Positions 3,360 through 49,472 of a DNA stretch of 64,000 nucleotides are shown in pieces. A program made the translations under genes and the position numbers. Under the pieces are notes generated by a model. It was not told where the DNA came from. It saw only the letters and a program-made list of their open reading frames with translations, and did no database searches. The first letter of the stretch is position 1. The number at the start of each line of letters is the position of its first letter. The DNA is taken from sequence record LR756502.1. One strand, given 5' to 3'.

Positions 3360-3882
3360 TGTTATTGTTATTATTTTGTGAGTATCTCTCTCTATTTTTT
3401 TGTTCCATATAAGCTTTTATATCATCATATGTAACTGCTCCTGGGTTATTTGAAATTAAACCTGGATTAGCTATTCTTTTCTCTGTTTCAATTTTCTTCT
3501 CTTCTGCTGACTTTACTCTTTCCTCATGCTCTGTTTCAAGCTTCTTTAAAATATGGCCAAGATAGTGCTCTATTCCTTTATCTTTTACCATATTTTTATC
3601 AAAATCGAATATAAACTCTTCTGTGTTATAGTATACTGCTATAACATCTTCCTTAATATAGTGATCTACATAGAACTTTATATCACCTATATTTCCTTGC
3701 GCATAAATTGTTGTTTTGTATTGTGTATTGTAGTGGTGGCTGAACTTATCTTTATCATTTAATAGTCTTTCATCACTATTTTTTGATTCCATTGTGGCTG
3801 ATAGCCCTAGATTTACTCTGAAGTAACGACATTTCTTTACTTCGGTAATTACTTTAAGATTTGTAACAATATTATAAGCCAT
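3346..3882 (-). CDS. Hypothetical protein
   Basis: 178-aa ORF in the minus-strand operon. Confidence 0.7.
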   Translation of the reverse strand: MAYNIVTNLKVITEVKKCRYFRVNLGLSATMESKNSDERLLNDKDKFSHHYNTQYKTTIYAQGNIGDIKFYVDHYIKEDVIAVYYNTEEFIFDFDKNMVKDKGIEHYLGHILKKLETEHEERVKSAEEKKIETEKRIANPGLISNNPGAVTYDDIKAYMEQKNRERYSQNNNNNNETK

Positions 3883-3918
3883 GTGTTATTTATTAAAAAA
3901 ATAGCGGTTCCTTCAACT

Positions 3919-4335
3919 CTAATTTAGTTTATATAGATAAACATTTTTATAATCAGGATCATAGTCTGTTATCTCGAACCCCATTGACTTGTATAGGTTG
4001 TTTGCTACTTCATTTTCTGGATCACAATGTAGGTATATATTTGAGTATTGTTTTTTACCTTTATCAAATGATATTCCATCTTCTAATCTTTTTATTATAG
4101 TAGATAATGCTTTTTTTGAATATCCTTGTCCTCTAAAATCTTTGTATATTTTGAATGAATATATCCATATATCCCCATCATCTGGACTAAGTCCAATTCT
4201 ACCAATCTTCTCATCTCCTATATAAATAGGATATATATACCCTCCCAATTTACTCCTACTCTCTGGTGTGTATGATTCATATTCATTTGGAATGAAAACA
4301 TCATTAGTTTCTTTATATGTCTTTATGTGCTTCAT
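3919..4335 (-). CDS. GNAT-family acetyltransferase with N-terminal leader tag
   Basis: Motif A FKIYKDFRGQGYSKKAL and motif B NEVANNLYKSMGFE; starts MKHIKTYKE. Confidence 0.85.
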   Translation of the reverse strand: MKHIKTYKETNDVFIPNEYESYTPESRSKLGGYIYPIYIGDEKIGRIGLSPDDGDIWIYSFKIYKDFRGQGYSKKALSTIIKRLEDGISFDKGKKQYSNIYLHCDPENEVANNLYKSMGFEITDYDPDYKNVYLYKLN

Positions 4336-4347
4336 TTTATTGCGGTA

Positions 4348-4902
4348 CTATTCAGTTTCTATTGAAAACTCTTCACCCTCTTCTTCGAATTGATCATCAA
4401 GCTCAATTTTAAGGTTTATTAGAAATTCCTCATTTATGTCTTTGATTTTAACATTTTTTGTTATTTGTCCAATCACCTCAAATGTATCTAAGTTATACTT
4501 CTTGAACTTAATATAACACTTCTCAATATCATCAGTTGAGAAGTCCTTATCTGGTTCTTTAGGAATAGCTTCCTTTAATTCAATCATTATATAAAGATTA
4601 TATGTTGCTTCATCATCAGAAAACTTAACATTTAAGTTATCGTACTGCTTTGAGTATTTGGATATTTCAGAGCTTTCGATTCTAACTCCTAAGTCCTTAA
4701 AGGTCATTGACTTTTCTTTGCTATCTGATTTAGCATCCTTGATTGACTTACCTTCTTCAGATTCTTGTTCTTTCTCACCTTCTTGGTATTCAAACATATT
4801 ATCTATCTTCTTCTTAATTTGTCTAAGAGCAGTTTCTATGTATGTCTCTGGTGTATCATTGAACTCCTCATTGATAAACTCTGTAAATTTTCTAATCTTC
4901 AT
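4348..4902 (-). CDS. Acidic hypothetical protein with N-terminal leader tag
   Basis: 184 aa; starts MKIRKFTEFINEE; TAATATATAC at 4907-4916. Confidence 0.75.
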   Translation of the reverse strand: MKIRKFTEFINEEFNDTPETYIETALRQIKKKIDNMFEYQEGEKEQESEEGKSIKDAKSDSKEKSMTFKDLGVRIESSEISKYSKQYDNLNVKFSDDEATYNLYIMIELKEAIPKEPDKDFSTDDIEKCYIKFKKYNLDTFEVIGQITKNVKIKDINEEFLINLKIELDDQFEEEGEEFSIETE

Positions 4903-5379: not shown

Positions 5380-5883
5380 TTATATATTTTTTTTATCTGT
5401 GTCCAGAATAGAATTAATTTTATTATCTCTCTCCTCAAATTTCTCTGTTATATCGGCATATTTTATTGTATAATATGGGTTTAGTGATACTAAATCAACA
5501 TACCTTATTATATAAAATATAACAAATTTTTTCCAAGATCCTTTTTCGAAGAATGCATCCAACTCATCATCTGTATCTAATTTAATAAGCTTTGCAGTAT
5601 ATGACTTCTCAACTATATTGTTATCCTCTACTTTAATTATTGTGAATGATGGTGATGCACATACATATGATATTTTTCTCCAGTGTTTATCCAATACATC
5701 ACCCATCCATATCGATGGATTTACTGATGCTGTGTGTGTATTTGTATTATCATGACACATTCTTAATGAATTATCATATAATATTTTTATTCCTTCTAAG
5801 TTATATTCAGATATTGGGTATATACTTATTTTTTTTGGATCTAATGTCGAATTAACATTACTACTAATTAGTTCTCTAAACAT
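5380..5883 (-). CDS. Hypothetical protein with C-terminal RxxKIxxIL tag
   Basis: Ends FEERDNKINSILDTDKKNI. Confidence 0.7.
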   Translation of the reverse strand: MFRELISSNVNSTLDPKKISIYPISEYNLEGIKILYDNSLRMCHDNTNTHTASVNPSIWMGDVLDKHWRKISYVCASPSFTIIKVEDNNIVEKSYTAKLIKLDTDDELDAFFEKGSWKKFVIFYIIRYVDLVSLNPYYTIKYADITEKFEERDNKINSILDTDKKNI

Positions 5884-11316: not shown

Positions 11317-11354
11317 AAGACTATATATTAAATTATATCTACTAATTTATTAAA

Positions 11355-45085: not shown

Positions 45086-45715
45086 ATGAAATATCTAAAA
45101 AAATATAAAAAGTATAAAGAGTCCTTAGAGATTGATCTGGCGCTATATAACATTGATTTAATGGAGTCATTAAATCTTTGGCATGATGTAATTCTTAATT
45201 CAATAGGTGCTGAAGAGATGGATATCTATGAAACATTTAAGTTACCAAAAGATCAGTACCAAGGTAGAATGAATATCGACTTTTTATCAAATGATGTTGA
45301 ATTTATTAATTCATTAGCTAGTATTGGATTAAAGAAATCACCTATACAAAGTACAGATGACTATGCTACTTTTATAAATAAACCTTGTAAATTTATGTTT
45401 ATTTATGGGGTTGAGTCAAATGAGTTAGAAAATCCAATGTATATATTGTTTGAGAGTTGGAACGAGACTTTAAGTAAGTGGCAAGATGGTAGACTATATA
45501 AGGTTAATGATGATGTTAAACGATTCTATGATAAATTATCATCAAAAACAATTGAGATAACTGATGGTGATCAGAACTACATATATTCAACTTCTAATGG
45601 TAGTGAATGGGAGCTTCAAAATAATAAGGAAAGTGAAATATACCAAAAGGTATTTAGAAAGGATGAGTTTGAGAAGCTTATAAATGACCGAAAGGCAAAG
45701 CTAAAAATTATTTAA
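45086..45715 (+). CDS. Hypothetical protein with N-terminal leader
   Basis: Starts MKYLKKYKKYKES. Confidence 0.75.
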   Translation: MKYLKKYKKYKESLEIDLALYNIDLMESLNLWHDVILNSIGAEEMDIYETFKLPKDQYQGRMNIDFLSNDVEFINSLASIGLKKSPIQSTDDYATFINKPCKFMFIYGVESNELENPMYILFESWNETLSKWQDGRLYKVNDDVKRFYDKLSSKTIEITDGDQNYIYSTSNGSEWELQNNKESEIYQKVFRKDEFEKLINDRKAKLKII

Positions 45716-46383
45716 ATTTGCATCCTTATATAAAGGAATATTAGGTTATCCTTCTCTTGTTGAGTTTGACTATAATGCCATTTCCAAGTAAATGTTGATT
45801 CGACAAATACTATTCTATCTTTAAGTGTTTTAATTTTCATTGTGATATTATCCGCATCATCCTCATCTATTTCATATTCAATATTTAATTCATTACATAT
45901 CGCATATATACTAGCTAAATCATTGTTATCATACATATTTGTTGACTTTATGTATATTTCATTAAGTCTTTCATCATTAACCCTATCTGGATGAGTTAGC
46001 TTTACTATATCTCTATATAACTTTTTTATTTTATTAGATTTAATATCTTTGATATCCTCATCAACCTCTGTAACCTCGTCACTTTCCTCCGGTATCTCAT
46101 TATTATCTCCCTCGTCTTCTTTGTTATCATTAGTTTCCTCAAATTTTATTATATCCTTTGTTTCATTATCTTTGGATTTTTTTATTATATCTTCTATTCT
46201 CTCATTTACTTTCTTATCAAATATATCCTTAAGTTCTTTGTTTCTTTCTAAAAATGAATTAACCTCCATCATAAATTTACTATCATTCTCAACTATTATT
46301 TCAGACTTATACTCAAAGTCTGATTCTATATAATCAAGCTCCTTTATAAGTTTTTTTATTTCTAGTTGTTTTAATTTGTTCAT
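45712..46383 (-). CDS. J-domain-like protein (HPD motif)
   Basis: Coiled coil and acidic linker, then KIKKLYRDIVKLTHPDRV. Confidence 0.7.
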   Translation of the reverse strand: MNKLKQLEIKKLIKELDYIESDFEYKSEIIVENDSKFMMEVNSFLERNKELKDIFDKKVNERIEDIIKKSKDNETKDIIKFEETNDNKEDEGDNNEIPEESDEVTEVDEDIKDIKSNKIKKLYRDIVKLTHPDRVNDERLNEIYIKSTNMYDNNDLASIYAICNELNIEYEIDEDDADNITMKIKTLKDRIVFVESTFTWKWHYSQTQQEKDNLIFLYIRMQI

Positions 46384-46441: not shown

Positions 46442-46747
46442 ATGAGTAGTGATAAACGAAAAATAAAAAATTATGGCGACTTTAGTATGCAAAAACCATC
46501 ATGCTATAAAGTATCAAATTTGCTAGCTATAACTGGAGAGCATAAACCAGGCTTCTTTGCTAAGAAGAGGAAATTTGAGATTATAATCTACTATACTCCA
46601 CTAAAAGGTAGAATAATGGATATTAATGCTATCGATATAGATCCATCATTCTTTCCATTTAAAAATGGTGATAATATATCTTTGGTTAGAGATTGGGTTA
46701 AGCTATATAACTATAATATAGTGATAGATAAAAAGATTTTTGGATAA
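46442..46747 (+). CDS. Hypothetical protein with weak leader
   Basis: KIKNYGDF near the N-terminus. Confidence 0.65.
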   Translation: MSSDKRKIKNYGDFSMQKPSCYKVSNLLAITGEHKPGFFAKKRKFEIIIYYTPLKGRIMDINAIDIDPSFFPFKNGDNISLVRDWVKLYNYNIVIDKKIFG

Positions 46748-46897
46748 ATGGTAGCTGTTTATATTTTAATGGGATCCGTTTTGGTAACATTTTCAATTTT
46801 TTTAGCAATGGGGCTATCTCATATGAATGAAAATCATCCAGATTATAATGGTGATGATTTGTTTGATCAAGACAAAATAGATAAAAAGAAAGTTTAA
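46748..46897 (+). CDS. Small single-TM protein missed by the track (49 aa)
   Basis: MVAVYILMGSVLVTFSIFLAMGLSHMNENHPDYNGDDLFDQDKIDKKKV*. Confidence 0.6.
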   Translation: MVAVYILMGSVLVTFSIFLAMGLSHMNENHPDYNGDDLFDQDKIDKKKV

Positions 46898-46907
46898 TAT
46901 ATAGTTT

Positions 46908-47423
46908 ATGAAAAACCTACCAATAGTTGAATTGTACTTAATAAAGAAAAGACTTATTAATGAGGGAATGCAAAATGACCCATTGATGGATGAGGTATAT
47001 GAGGCTATAAAATATAGAGAATTAATGATACTTGAAGATACGTCAGCAACTGGTGGTCCTTGTGTATCTGGTGGTATGGGTGCTGTTGTATCATCTCAAC
47101 CATCTGGATTAGCTGGTGCTACAATTGGTACAAATTGGTCAAGTGGTGGTGGTACTATTGGTTCTGGTGATGTTTCAATTCCATATAACCCAGGTGTTGG
47201 TAGTGCTAGAATGTCTCAAAAGATACCAATGCAAATGGGTACTAGTCATGGTAGTAGAACTGGTAAGAAGTCCAGAAAGAAAAGAATGACTATGAAGACA
47301 CTTCAACAATTAAAGAATACATTCGCACAAAAGCAAGACTACACAAAGACCGGTGAGCCTAAAAGTAAAGTTATGAACTTTGATGACTTTCAGAAAGCCG
47401 ACATTGATAAAATTAAGAAATAA
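46908..47423 (+). CDS. Gly/Ser-rich hypothetical protein
   Basis: ILEDTSATGGP...GGGTIGSGD; TAATATATAG at 46895-46904. Confidence 0.7.
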   Translation: MKNLPIVELYLIKKRLINEGMQNDPLMDEVYEAIKYRELMILEDTSATGGPCVSGGMGAVVSSQPSGLAGATIGTNWSSGGGTIGSGDVSIPYNPGVGSARMSQKIPMQMGTSHGSRTGKKSRKKRMTMKTLQQLKNTFAQKQDYTKTGEPKSKVMNFDDFQKADIDKIKK

Positions 47424-47450
47424 TATTTCTTGGTAAAAGTGGTTCTGGTA
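47417..47450 (+). pseudogene. Remnant of the original gmk 5' end (P-loop)
   Basis: gaa ata ata ttt ctt ggt aaa agt ggt tct ggt a = EIIFLGKSGSG, no ATG, mirrors gmk CIIMGPSGSGK. Confidence 0.6.
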
Positions 47451-47466
47451 GCTTAATATATAGACT

Positions 47467-48270
47467 ATGGAAACAGTTTTTATATATGTTTTAGTCGACC
47501 CGAGAAATGAACAAGTTAGATATGTTGGTAAAGCAAAGGATCCTATCGATAGGTATAGAAATCACTATAATTCTGCTCGGGATAAAAATACACACAAGAG
47601 AAATTGGATAAATAATCTTAGAAAAGATGGACTTCGACCAGAACTACTAGTTATTGATGAGGTTGAGTCTAATAATTGGGTATTCTGGGAATGTTTTTAT
47701 ATATCTCTTTATAAATCATATGGATTTAATCTAGTTAACTATACATCTGGTGGAGATGGTTCTACTTTTGGAAATAATGGATCCTTCAAAATTGGAAATA
47801 TTCCGCATAATAAGGGTGTGCCTCGAAGTGAGGAGACAAAGGTTAAATTGAGAAATGCTATGCTCGGTAAGCCAAACAAACATAGTTATAAACCAATAAT
47901 ACAATATGATTTACAGTATAATCAAATTAAAAAGTTTAAGTGTATAAAAGATGCTATAGATGAAAGTAGTGGATTTTTCAGTGCTGGTAAAATATCAAAC
48001 TGTCTCAAAGGTAAAAGACCACATCATAGAAATTTTATTTGGAAGTATGATGATGGTAGTGAATTATTAAACATTAAAATAGAGAGAAAAATAAAGACTG
48101 GTAGGAGTGTTTATCAGTATAGCAAAGACTACATACTTTTAAATGTGTTTATATCACTAGAACAAGCAGCTAAACATGTTGGTGCTAAGTCACAAAATAT
48201 TCTATTTTGTTGTAAAAATGAGAATAGGAGGGCTAAGGGTTTCTATTGGAGATATAAACAAATTGAATAA
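47467..48270 (+). mobile_element. Free-standing GIY-YIG homing endonuclease with NUMOD3/NUMOD1-like DNA-binding repeats
   Basis: FIYVLVDPRNEQVRYVGKA...RYRNH...WECFYI...NYTSGGDG; HNKGVPRSEETKVKL; PIIQYDL and VYQYSKD repeats; own TAATATATAG at 47454-47463. Confidence 0.88.
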
Positions 48271-48283
48271 TTTACAATATAAA

Positions 48284-48847
48284 ATGAAAATATCTTTAGA
48301 ATTAATGGTTAAGTATGAGAAATGTATAATTATGGGACCTAGTGGTTCGGGAAAAGATTTCTTAATGAGGAAACTAGTTGAGAAAGGTCTTAGTCCTTGT
48401 TTAAAGACCACTACTCGTCCTAAGAGAAAATTTGAGCAACAAGGAGTTACATATAATTTCATATCAAATTTTGAATTCACAAAACTAATTAAGGAAAGTA
48501 AACTGTTTGCATACCAAGAGTTTATGGTTACTCCGGATAATTCTGAGCCTGAGAAGTGGTTTTATGGGTTAACAAACGAGGAGTTTAAGACATCCCAGAT
48601 TTTCATAATGACACCAAGTGAATTGATTAATTTATCAGAGGAAGATAGAAAGAAATGCTTTGTAATATATCTTGATATATCGAGATCTGTTAGAGAGTCT
48701 AGGTTATTCAAAAGAGAGGATAAAAACGATTCAGTTACTAGAAGAATGGATTCTGATGAGCTGGATTTTTCCGGATTCACAAATTATGATTTAAGAGTAA
48801 CTGACCCTGAATTTACTGCGGATGAGGTTTATGATTTAATGTTTTAG
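48284..48847 (+). CDS. gmk: Guanylate kinase
   Basis: IIMGPSGSGKD, TTRPKRKFEQQGVTYNFIS, WFYG; start ATG 48284 or 48305. Confidence 0.85.
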   Translation: MKISLELMVKYEKCIIMGPSGSGKDFLMRKLVEKGLSPCLKTTTRPKRKFEQQGVTYNFISNFEFTKLIKESKLFAYQEFMVTPDNSEPEKWFYGLTNEEFKTSQIFIMTPSELINLSEEDRKKCFVIYLDISRSVRESRLFKREDKNDSVTRRMDSDELDFSGFTNYDLRVTDPEFTADEVYDLMF

Positions 48848-48848
48848 A

Positions 48849-49472
48849 CTACTTACACTTTATAACAAAAGCTGCCTTTCTTGTTAAGAAACCAAAATTT
48901 GCTTCGAAATATGTATATTTAACACCATCTATCTCAAAAGCATTCTCATCATTCTTATATCCTTTATTTACTAAAATGTAATCAAAGCTTGACCAAAATG
49001 ATGGAACTCTTAATATTCTATAATCACTAGTCTCTTTAACAACTTCTAACTCATTCAGATTAACTTGTTGACCATTTGGTAGGTCATTCTTATTAGTTGT
49101 AGCATAGATATATGATCCCCATGTACTTGTTTTATAGTATATAGTCGATACTCCTTCTTCAACAGTTACCGCGTAGTCACTACTCTTTCCTGCTTGTCTA
49201 TAAGTACCAATTACTCCATCATTTTTATTAATTGATATATTTAGATTAGCATCAAAAAATTGAGCAGTGTGTATATGATATTCTGGGAAGTTAGATAGTT
49301 CTGTCTCTTGATAAGATGCTTTTGATTTACCTGGTGTGGTATCAATTGAATGAATACCAGCAGCTAAGCCTCCTACTAGAGCTCCTCCGATGAGTAATTT
49401 TGCAGGAACAGTAAACTTCTTCATATCTACTTCTTCGTTACAGAAGTCATTATAGTTTTTAATATTCTTCAT
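48849..49472 (-). CDS. Hypothetical protein with N-terminal leader followed by a TM-like segment
   Basis: MKNIKNYNDFCNEE...LLIGGALVGGLAAGI. Confidence 0.7.
   Translation of the reverse strand: MKNIKNYNDFCNEEVDMKKFTVPAKLLIGGALVGGLAAGIHSIDTTPGKSKASYQETELSNFPEYHIHTAQFFDANLNISINKNDGVIGTYRQAGKSSDYAVTVEEGVSTIYYKTSTWGSYIYATTNKNDLPNGQQVNLNELEVVKETSDYRILRVPSFWSSFDYILVNKGYKNDENAFEIDGVKYTYFEANFGFLTRKAAFVIKCK

Follow-up and report, generated by a model that had tools for sequence, protein, structure and literature searches.

Several described systems resemble parts of the locus studied here. Free-standing GIY-YIG (Seg) endonucleases of T-even phages spread by "intronless homing": they lie next to the genes they target, are present in some relatives and absent in others, and co-convert neighbouring markers (PMC2988022). 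According to the same review, Seg enzymes cut hundreds to thousands of bp from their own insertion site, and no target stub is described for them. A different arrangement is found in mitochondrial mobile endonuclease ORFs (mORFs) of Allomyces (atp6) and Glomus (atp6, atp9, cox2, nad3), which travel with a foreign copy of the end of the host gene. The foreign copy takes over function, while the native end is displaced as an unexpressed duplicate, so no intron is needed (PMC3630166). I-TevI, encoded in the T4 td intron, has a homing-site-like operator (15/20 nt) over its own late promoter; this sequence is bound as well as the homing site, but is cleaved about 100-fold less efficiently (PMC2988022). 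Finally, an endonuclease gene can land in a conserved part of a nucleotide-metabolism or replication gene and leave two functional gene halves, as in Aeh1 nrdA/mobE and in "fractured genes" with split inteins (PMC2988022; PMC2677866).

We analysed a 64,000-nucleotide stretch (hereafter, the window) of LR756502.1, a 642-kb uncultured phage. In the window, a free-standing GIY-YIG endonuclease gene lies between a short, apparently dead copy of the P-loop coding DNA of a guanylate-kinase-like gene (gmk) and an intact gmk whose P-loop is worded differently. In contrast to the Seg enzymes, the inferred cut is within about 50 bp of the gmk start, and target-derived sequence is found on both sides of the endonuclease. 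Relative to the mORFs the arrangement is a mirror image: mORFs replace the 3' (C-terminal) end and sit downstream of, or fused to, the gene, while the element described here replaces the 5' end, brings a promoter-like motif, and resides in a phage instead of an organelle, with the displaced copy trimmed to about 30 nt and located at the endonuclease promoter. The element thus works like an mORF but does not belong to that group. Unlike the I-TevI operator, which overlaps a late promoter inside the intron, the target-like sequence here is recognisably a truncated copy of the target gene's coding DNA. Compared to the split genes, the target gene is whole, and only a non-coding stub is left upstream. 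Besides introns and inteins, bringing a spare, re-worded copy of a gene's start would be a third way for a selfish endonuclease to invade the most conserved site of a useful gene harmlessly, one known until now mainly for gene ends in fungal mitochondria.

Organisation of the locus

The features of the locus, in order, are as follows.

46908..47423 (+), conserved upstream gene (171 aa, no Pfam or PHROG family found), the left anchor of the locus
47420..47450 (+), stub, a copy of the gmk beta-1/P-loop coding DNA (IIFLGKSGSG) that has no start codon and ends before the Lys codon
47453..47463 (+), promoter-like motif TTAATATATAG, 3 nt before the endonuclease ATG
47467..48270 (+), free-standing GIY-YIG homing endonuclease gene (267 aa), with an N-terminal GIY-YIG domain followed by NUMOD-type DNA-binding modules
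48271..48304 (+), spacer carried by the cassette, with an AATATAAA promoter-like motif for gmk and an upstream ATG at 48284 that is probably not the start
48305..48847 (+), intact guanylate-kinase-like gene (gmk, 180 aa)
48317..48355 (+), replacement tract of 13 codons (EKCIIMGPSGSGK) that travel with the endonuclease, the presumed cleavage-resistant allele

The sequence reads as stated in the preliminary description, and the ten codons of the stub occupy positions 47420-47449. The first two overlap the TAA stop of the upstream gene (47421-47423), and a stop at 47414 precedes the stretch in its own frame. The corresponding codons of the intact gmk are at 48326-48355, with the live P-loop at 48335-48355. 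To determine whether the resemblance exceeds chance, a profile of the 33-nt P-loop region from 43 endonuclease-free relatives was searched with nhmmer against both strands of the window. Two significant hits were obtained, the stub at 47421-47450 (18.8 bits, E 1.5e-4) and, with a lower score, the P-loop of the working gmk (16.5 bits, E 7.6e-4); the next hit had an E-value of 0.4. At the protein level, the stub scores 31 against the gmk N-terminus, compared to a maximum of 29 for 600 random segments of the window (p = 0.0017, the floor of the test). The 30-mer is unique in the 642-kb genome and in that of a 634-kb relative. Within a single locus, ungapped 21-mer comparisons of the stub and the 5' end of the resident gene were not significant in these AT-rich genomes (in the window, the stub and the resident P-loop share only 19/30 nt), and the case rests on comparison with endonuclease-free relatives.

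The endonuclease matches Pfam GIY-YIG (PF01541, 27.1 bits against a cut-off of 22.6), NUMOD1 (33 bits, cut-off 22.8), and I-HmuI NUMOD-like (28.8 bits, cut-off 27), as well as PHROG homing endonuclease families. Catalytic-motif residues Y7, Y19, G21, R29, H33, E75, and N91 are invariant in 6 homologues, and the enzyme looks active. A PDB sequence-profile search with the endonuclease alignment gave no hit at E 0.01 or better. In a Foldseek search with a structural model, the top hit was I-HmuI (1u3e), and the N-terminal domain of the model matched I-TevI (1ln0; TM 0.73 normalised by target, probability 1.00), though E-values were weak in both cases. The identity of gmk is supported by Pfam PF00625 (E 1.2e-10), PHROG 1815 guanylate kinase (E 3.4e-30), and alignment with 23 relatives. 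The gmk start is more likely the ATG at 48305 (MVKYEKC...) than the one at 48284, since relatives begin M-x-K-x-E-K-C, and a roughly 95% identical relative in another study has a 1-nt deletion at 48295.

The TTAATATATAG motif occurs 7 times in the window against 1.14 expected, and T[TA]ATATATA followed by 4-5 nt and ATG precedes many genes. Its promoter function is inferred; a σ70 consensus scan did not flag it, and no terminator was found in 46700-49000. Comparable spacers with TAATATAA-like motifs occur in front of gmk in other endonuclease carriers. The source sequencing runs carry the stretch unchanged. No contig joins across the cassette, so no endonuclease-free variant of this same phage was seen, and no RNA run contained it.

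Related loci with and without the endonuclease

About 90 homologous loci (designated by L and a number), all metagenomic contigs, were retrieved using the upstream gene. The endonuclease is absent from about 48 relatives and from the whole of the 634-kb genome. Where present, it always lies directly before gmk: five distinct carriers have gmk in the retrieved locus, and in two more (L029 and L060) the contig ends inside or just after the endonuclease. All carriers (the window, L088, L018/L100/L101, L029, L048/L049, L060, and L080) have the stub 2-6 nt before the promoter motif, behind three different upstream genes, while no endonuclease-free locus has a second copy. The stub thus goes with the endonuclease and not with the upstream gene. 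Most of the endonuclease-free relatives read [LV]I[IL]LGKSGSGKD at the gmk P-loop, with DNA nearly identical to the stub. In the closest of them, L008 and L009 (upstream gene 82% identical, gmk 79%), gmk follows 56 nt after the homologue of the upstream gene and has the P-loop VIVLGKSGSGKDF, as the preliminary description predicted. Most relatives have an 81-aa zinc-ribbon-like gene between these two genes, which the subclade of the window lacks.

A mosaic structure of gmk could be observed in carriers. The 13-codon tract of the window is identical to that of the distant carrier L018 at 35/39 nt (90%) and to that of L088 at 33/39 nt, but only at 18-19/39 nt (46-49%) to L008/L009. Downstream of the tract the relationship is reversed, with the window 77-81% identical to L008/L009 against 68-71% to L018 (Fisher p 1.2e-4). 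The effect was seen in four independent carrier/non-carrier pairs: in L080 against L083, 482/489 nt of the gene body (99%) but 26/39 nt of the P-loop segment (67%) are identical (p 1e-11); in L048 against L044 the values are 89% and 54% (p 4e-7), in the window against L009 78% and 49% (p 1e-4), and in L088 against L008 75% and 51% (p 2e-3). Carriers share the segment with each other at 77-90% identity, although their gene bodies are only 66-74% identical. In the near-isogenic pair L080/L083, homology stops just after the upstream stop codon and resumes 3 nt before the gmk ATG, after which a divergent tract covers gmk codons 2-29. Such short mosaic patches in core phage genes can mislead phylogenies. 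The association of endonuclease presence with P-loop type in the gmk family was only p = 0.05, without phylogenetic correction. L075, L092, L062, and L069 show progressive loss of the endonuclease, in a subclade whose P-loops are all of the non-GK type. Larger inserts before gmk in L014, L044, L090, L062, L069, L087, L078, and L058 are ordinary small or unknown genes, judging by inspection of their ORFs without a family scan; the site is not a hotspot for other endonucleases.

Origin of the cassette and alternative explanations

We consider it likely that the region is a mobile cassette built around the endonuclease and consisting, from left to right, of a roughly 30-nt stub of the endonuclease-free, presumably cleavable type; the promoter-like motif and ORF of the endonuclease; a short spacer with a new promoter-like motif; and a replacement gmk 5' segment with re-worded P-loop DNA (LGK changed to MGP, with other codons). 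The preliminary description had proposed that the element inserted into the most conserved site of gmk and brought a cleavage-resistant 5' end, restoring the gene without an intron or intein. This interpretation is supported and appears largely right, its sequence-testable predictions having been borne out, with the reservation that cleavage of the ancestral allele and resistance of the new one are inferred. In the mechanism we infer, the enzyme cuts the P-loop DNA of endonuclease-free gmk alleles in a mixed infection, at or near the GSG|K junction, and repair from the carrier genome copies the endonuclease together with the resistant 5' segment, so that gmk stays whole. The stub most likely arose in a one-sided repair event, in which the right end recombined within gmk while the broken left end, the old P-loop, was joined illegitimately to DNA in front of the endonuclease promoter. 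One-sided illegitimate double-strand-break repair at microhomology is documented for T4 intron homing (PMC2988022, citing Parker et al. 1999). The stub appears to have been inherited with the cassette since then and is not the old P-loop of the window lineage itself, as it is 53% identical to the P-loop of L008 but 70-79% identical to the other stubs. Some observations are not readily accommodated. The stub begins flush with the stop codon of whichever gene lies upstream, so the old spacer, start codon, and first 8-12 codons are missing in every gmk and RuvC-type carrier (see below); a simple one-step insertion does not give this, and later trimming, or selection for a stub of fixed length, would be needed. 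In addition, the resident allele of L080 is still GKSGSGK at the protein level, so any resistance there would have to be a DNA-level effect.

The stub is better conserved than synonymous sites and may be functional rather than simply dead. One possibility, which we regard as tentative and which explains persistence and not origin, is that the stub is kept as an operator: the DNA-binding domain of the endonuclease would bind this uncuttable half-target and repress transcription of its own gene, as I-TevI does, extending to free-standing enzymes the autoregulation known from T4 intron endonucleases. The nearly constant distance to the promoter motif, and a stub length of about 24-36 nt in all target families wherever the start codon lay, agree with this view. 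Stubs of L018 and L048 are identical at 26/28 nt, compared to 58% at third codon positions of the adjacent endonuclease gene (p 5e-5), and those of the window and L018 at 22/28 nt, compared to 55% (p 0.009). However, the samples are small (28 nt) and not phylogenetically independent, the excess is weak against overall endonuclease nucleotide identity (p 0.007 to 0.29), and several stubs are visibly decaying (GKCVSY in L088, GNRGTVF in L080). It is also conceivable, though in our view doubtful, that the stub is a passive relic, seen only because the cassette is young or because deletions would damage the adjacent promoter or the upstream stop codon. The absence of a start codon, the in-frame stop, and the different degrees of decay fit a relic, and part of the stub is constrained for trivial reasons. 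Yet carriers' endonucleases are only 55-71% identical in protein outside the L018/L029 pair (84%), with third positions 48-61% identical, and a neutral 30-mer should be far more eroded than the 74% mean identity observed; the design also recurs in families whose endonucleases are 30-45% identical and have different targets.

A role of the stub as a left homology arm, which would let the cassette home whatever lies upstream of gmk, is unlikely. The region between the upstream gene and gmk is highly variable among relatives, so a built-in arm would help, and the stub ends where the mosaic tract and the RuvC-type polymorphism place the break. However, recombination within the stub would leave the recipient's own spacer, start codon, and first codons in front of it, which no gmk or RuvC-type carrier shows, and in L080/L083 left homology runs through the whole upstream gene. 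The stretch is only 10 codons, and GxxGxG-like strings are common, but chance resemblance, or a fragment of some other P-loop gene from the donor's previous context, is not supported and is very improbable given the ranking of the stub ahead of gmk itself in a gmk-specific profile search of 128 kb, its conservation in all carriers, and the matches at other target genes. Many phage GIY-YIG endonucleases are intron-encoded, and the stub and gmk are in the same frame modulo 3; nevertheless, a gmk split by a group I intron or an intein, with the stub as exon 1, was rejected. No Rfam family, including introns, lies in 46500-49200, the stub lacks a start codon and the N-terminal codons, and gmk is an uninterrupted ORF with its own start and a complete P-loop. 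A 10-bp hairpin spans the upstream stop codon and the start of the stub, but folding of this region (47405-47475) is not significant (z -1.6).

Homologues at other target genes

A scan of viral contigs with the single endonuclease sequence found nothing, while an alignment of six homologues found 31 loci. Homologues 30-51% identical (to the window's enzyme or to each other) lie before dNMP-kinase or RuvC-like genes, each with a stub of that gene's N-terminal motif located before the endonuclease promoter; the match has p below 0.05 in 13 of 18 loci. It is possible, though not established, that a whole family of free-standing GIY-YIG endonucleases in uncultured aquatic phages moves as a self-contained gene-end replacement cassette, in which the retained 24-36-nt stub is a working part, either an I-TevI-like operator or a target mimic. 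If so, the target gene, and the cut position to within a few bases, could be read directly from the sequence in front of the endonuclease promoter for at least three target genes: guanylate kinase, dNMP kinase, and a RuvC-like resolvase.

For the dNMP-kinase targets no endonuclease-free relatives were found, the only extra relative, L132, also carrying the endonuclease, and the mosaic test could therefore not be repeated for that family. In the RuvC-like family, all 11 carriers read STK-V-IG, and 67 of 69 non-carriers read STK-T-IG. There the stub ends exactly before that codon.

The endonuclease locus and its P-loop-like stub

The locus lies in LR756502.1, an unannotated 642,428-bp uncultured phage assembly, and consists of the following features:

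46908-47423, conserved gene with no known family
47424-47466, 43-nt spacer
47467-48270, GIY-YIG + NUMOD endonuclease ORF
ending at 48847, guanylate-kinase-like gene (gmk)

The spacer, together with the last bases of the upstream gene, reads IIFLGKSGSG in a frame that has a stop just before it and no start codon. This stub is followed by TTAATATATAG, located 3 nt before the endonuclease ATG. The motif is over-represented in the window (TTAATATATAR is found 7 times, against 1.14 expected). In the form T[TA]ATATATA, followed by 4-5 nt and ATG, it precedes many genes (e.g., at 46895, 47454, 58919, and 60438 on the plus strand, and at 11330 and 4916 on the minus strand). It looks like this phage's own promoter, giving very short leaders, and the endonuclease thus uses the phage's own promoter-like signal. 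A 10-bp hairpin can form at 47412-47434 between the last codons of the upstream gene (ATTAAGAAAT) and the first bases of the stub (ATTTCTTGGT), but the fold is not significant overall (z -1.6), and no T-run follows. There are two in-frame ATGs for gmk at 48284-48307. Comparison with relatives, and a 1-nt deletion at 48295 in a ~95% identical relative from another study, favor 48305 as the start.

To determine whether the stub is more than a chance resemblance, ca. 90 related loci were retrieved from metagenomes and viral contigs using the upstream gene, and the four genes were mapped on them. Most relatives lack the endonuclease, and their gmk P-loop reads [LV]I[IL]LGKSGSGKD[FY]. A DNA profile of this 33-nt region was built from 43 endonuclease-free relatives and used to search the whole window on both strands. 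The best hit was the stub at 47421-47450 (E 1.5e-4), while the real P-loop at 48325-48355 came second (E 7.6e-4), and nothing else was below E 0.4. The stub therefore looks more like a typical gmk P-loop of this phage group than the P-loop of the working gene does.

Homologues of the endonuclease (56-68% identity over the full protein) were found in retrieved loci L088, L018 (also L100 and L101), L029, L048/L049, L060, and L080. In every locus where gmk is present, the endonuclease lies directly before it. Every one of these loci has a P-loop-like stub a few bases before the promoter motif: IIFLGKCVSY, VIILGKRGTGC, VIILGKRGSGI, IIILGKRGTGF, LIILGKRVSGV, and IIIIGNRGTVF. The gene in front of the stub differs, being the 46908 homologue in the window and L088, an 81-aa zinc-ribbon-like gene in four loci, and an extra ORF in L018; in each case, the stub starts within a few bases of the stop codon of that gene. 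No endonuclease-free locus has a second P-loop-like copy, and the 634-kb relative LR745206 has no homologue of the endonuclease anywhere.

The closest endonuclease-free relatives are loci L008 and L009 (upstream gene 82% identical, gmk 79%). In both, gmk is located 56 nt after the upstream gene and starts MSVVKHEKVIVLGKSGSGKDF. This is in agreement with the preliminary description, which predicted that gmk of endonuclease-free relatives should start directly after the 46908 gene with a GKSGSGK-type sequence. An 81-83-aa zinc-ribbon-like gene (CxxC...CxxC; e.g., positions 4516-4761 of locus L001 and 3706-3957 of locus L007) lies between the upstream gene and gmk in most relatives, but is missing in the window, L088, L008, and L009. 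This interval is hypervariable: in L010, L011, L015, L018, L029, L053, L062, L069, and L087 it is filled with small genes that begin MKHLKKFNE or MKYLK... in varying numbers, apparently a family of paralogues.

Mosaic structure of gmk and inheritance of the stub

We next compared the 13 codons EK...GK (48317-48355) with the rest of the gene in loci with the endonuclease (carriers) and without it (non-carriers).

Table. Nucleotide identity in the P-loop segment and in the body of gmk (comparison; P-loop segment; gene body; Fisher p)
Window vs. distant carrier L018; 35/39 (90%); 68-71%; -
Window vs. carrier L088; 33/39 (85%); 72-77%; -
Window vs. non-carriers L008/L009; 18-19/39 (46-49%); 77-81%; 1e-4
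L088 vs. L008; 51%; 75%; 2e-3
L048 vs. L044; 54%; 89%; 4e-7
L080 vs. L083; 26/39 (67%); 482/489 (99%); 1e-11

In the near-isogenic pair L080/L083, homology stops just after the upstream stop codon and resumes 3 nt before the gmk ATG, and the differences are confined to gmk codons 2-29. The endonuclease therefore travels with a short gmk 5′ tract that ends just past the P-loop. This places the inferred recombination-initiating break in or next to the P-loop DNA of endonuclease-free alleles.

The stub of the window is about 53% identical, by our count, to the P-loop of its nearest endonuclease-free relative, but 64-79% identical to the stubs of other carriers, five of which share an AGT-to-AGA change. 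Thus, the stub is inherited with the endonuclease, and is not left behind afresh in each genome. Stubs average 74% pairwise identity, while third codon positions of the adjacent endonuclease genes average 56%, and endonuclease nucleotides overall 70%. In the best pairs, the excess over third positions is significant (26/28 against 58%, p 5e-5, and 22/28 against 55%, p 0.009). The result hints at constraint, although the samples are small and related.

Recurrence at other target genes and an inferred mechanism

Interestingly, more distant homologues of the endonuclease (30-45% identity to the enzyme of the window) sit directly before other genes, namely dNMP-kinase genes (PHROG 139, Pfam DNMK) and RuvC-like resolvase genes (PHROG 159). 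Each has, just before its promoter, a dead copy of the N-terminal motif of the gene that follows: KIVVINGIAQ before MKVVVINGGAE, LIEISGYASSG before IIGISGYSQSG, IIGSGRHGLVTF before VLGNARHGKDTF, and LGLDIST before LGLDIST. Tested against random segments of the same loci, the match had p below 0.05 in 13 of 18 loci, and 6 were at the floor of the test. In 80 RuvC-like loci, all 11 carriers, which carry two endonuclease subtypes only 51% identical to each other, read STK-V-IG, while 67 of 69 non-carriers read STK-T-IG. There, the stub ends exactly before that codon and again abuts the upstream stop codon. Stub length is roughly constant at 24-36 nt, whether or not the start codon falls inside it. 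The genome LR756502.1 itself holds two further GIY-YIG genes, a 184-aa ORF (within 386691-389987) and an 81-aa open frame that may be a fragment (within 138724-141912). The first also has AATAATATATAAACT before its ATG. No target stub was recognized there.

We infer that the enzyme cuts the P-loop DNA of endonuclease-free alleles near GSG|K, that the re-worded allele is resistant, and that the stub arose by one-sided illegitimate break repair, a process documented for T4 intron homing (PMC2988022). The flush left edge and the conservation of the stub may best be explained by a function, the closest precedent for which is the I-TevI operator, a homing-site-like sequence at the enzyme's own promoter (PMC2988022). 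The closest known design is the mitochondrial endonuclease ORF that brings a replacement C-terminus for atp6, atp9, cox2, or nad3 (PMC3630166). The present case is its mirror image at the 5′ end, and is found in phages; no description of this arrangement in phages was found in the incomplete body of literature searched.

Endonuclease decay, the predicted enzyme, and occurrence in sequencing reads

One subclade has only non-GK P-loops (GP or GG) and shows the endonuclease in decay. Locus L075 keeps the C-terminal DNA-binding ~70 residues (5478-5740), locus L092 keeps the last ~13 codons, and loci L062 (6040-6090) and L069 (6040-6100) keep only a short footprint of the 3′ end in front of gmk. 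L092 also has a 6-nt in-frame insertion carrying a TAA stop exactly between the GSG and K codons of the gmk P-loop (within 4640-4760), just downstream of the surviving endonuclease codons. This may be a scar at the break site, or a dead gmk.

The catalytic-motif residues of the endonuclease are invariant in six homologues. A structural model (pLDDT 73) has a predicted I-TevI-like catalytic domain (1ln0, TM 0.73 by target) and predicted I-HmuI-like DNA-binding modules, joined to the catalytic domain by a low-confidence linker. No Rfam family lies in the region, so this is neither an intron nor an intein arrangement.

No RNA run was found to contain the stretch. The two probable source runs contain it in single contigs without a difference, and a roughly 95% identical carrier is present in an unrelated sediment study. 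Co-occurring relatives with the zinc-ribbon gene and a susceptible-type P-loop are present in the same lake study. At 45715-46383 on the minus strand, a 223-aa acidic protein with a weak DnaJ J-domain match (E 0.001, below the cut-off) is encoded, and it is conserved in the relatives next to the locus.
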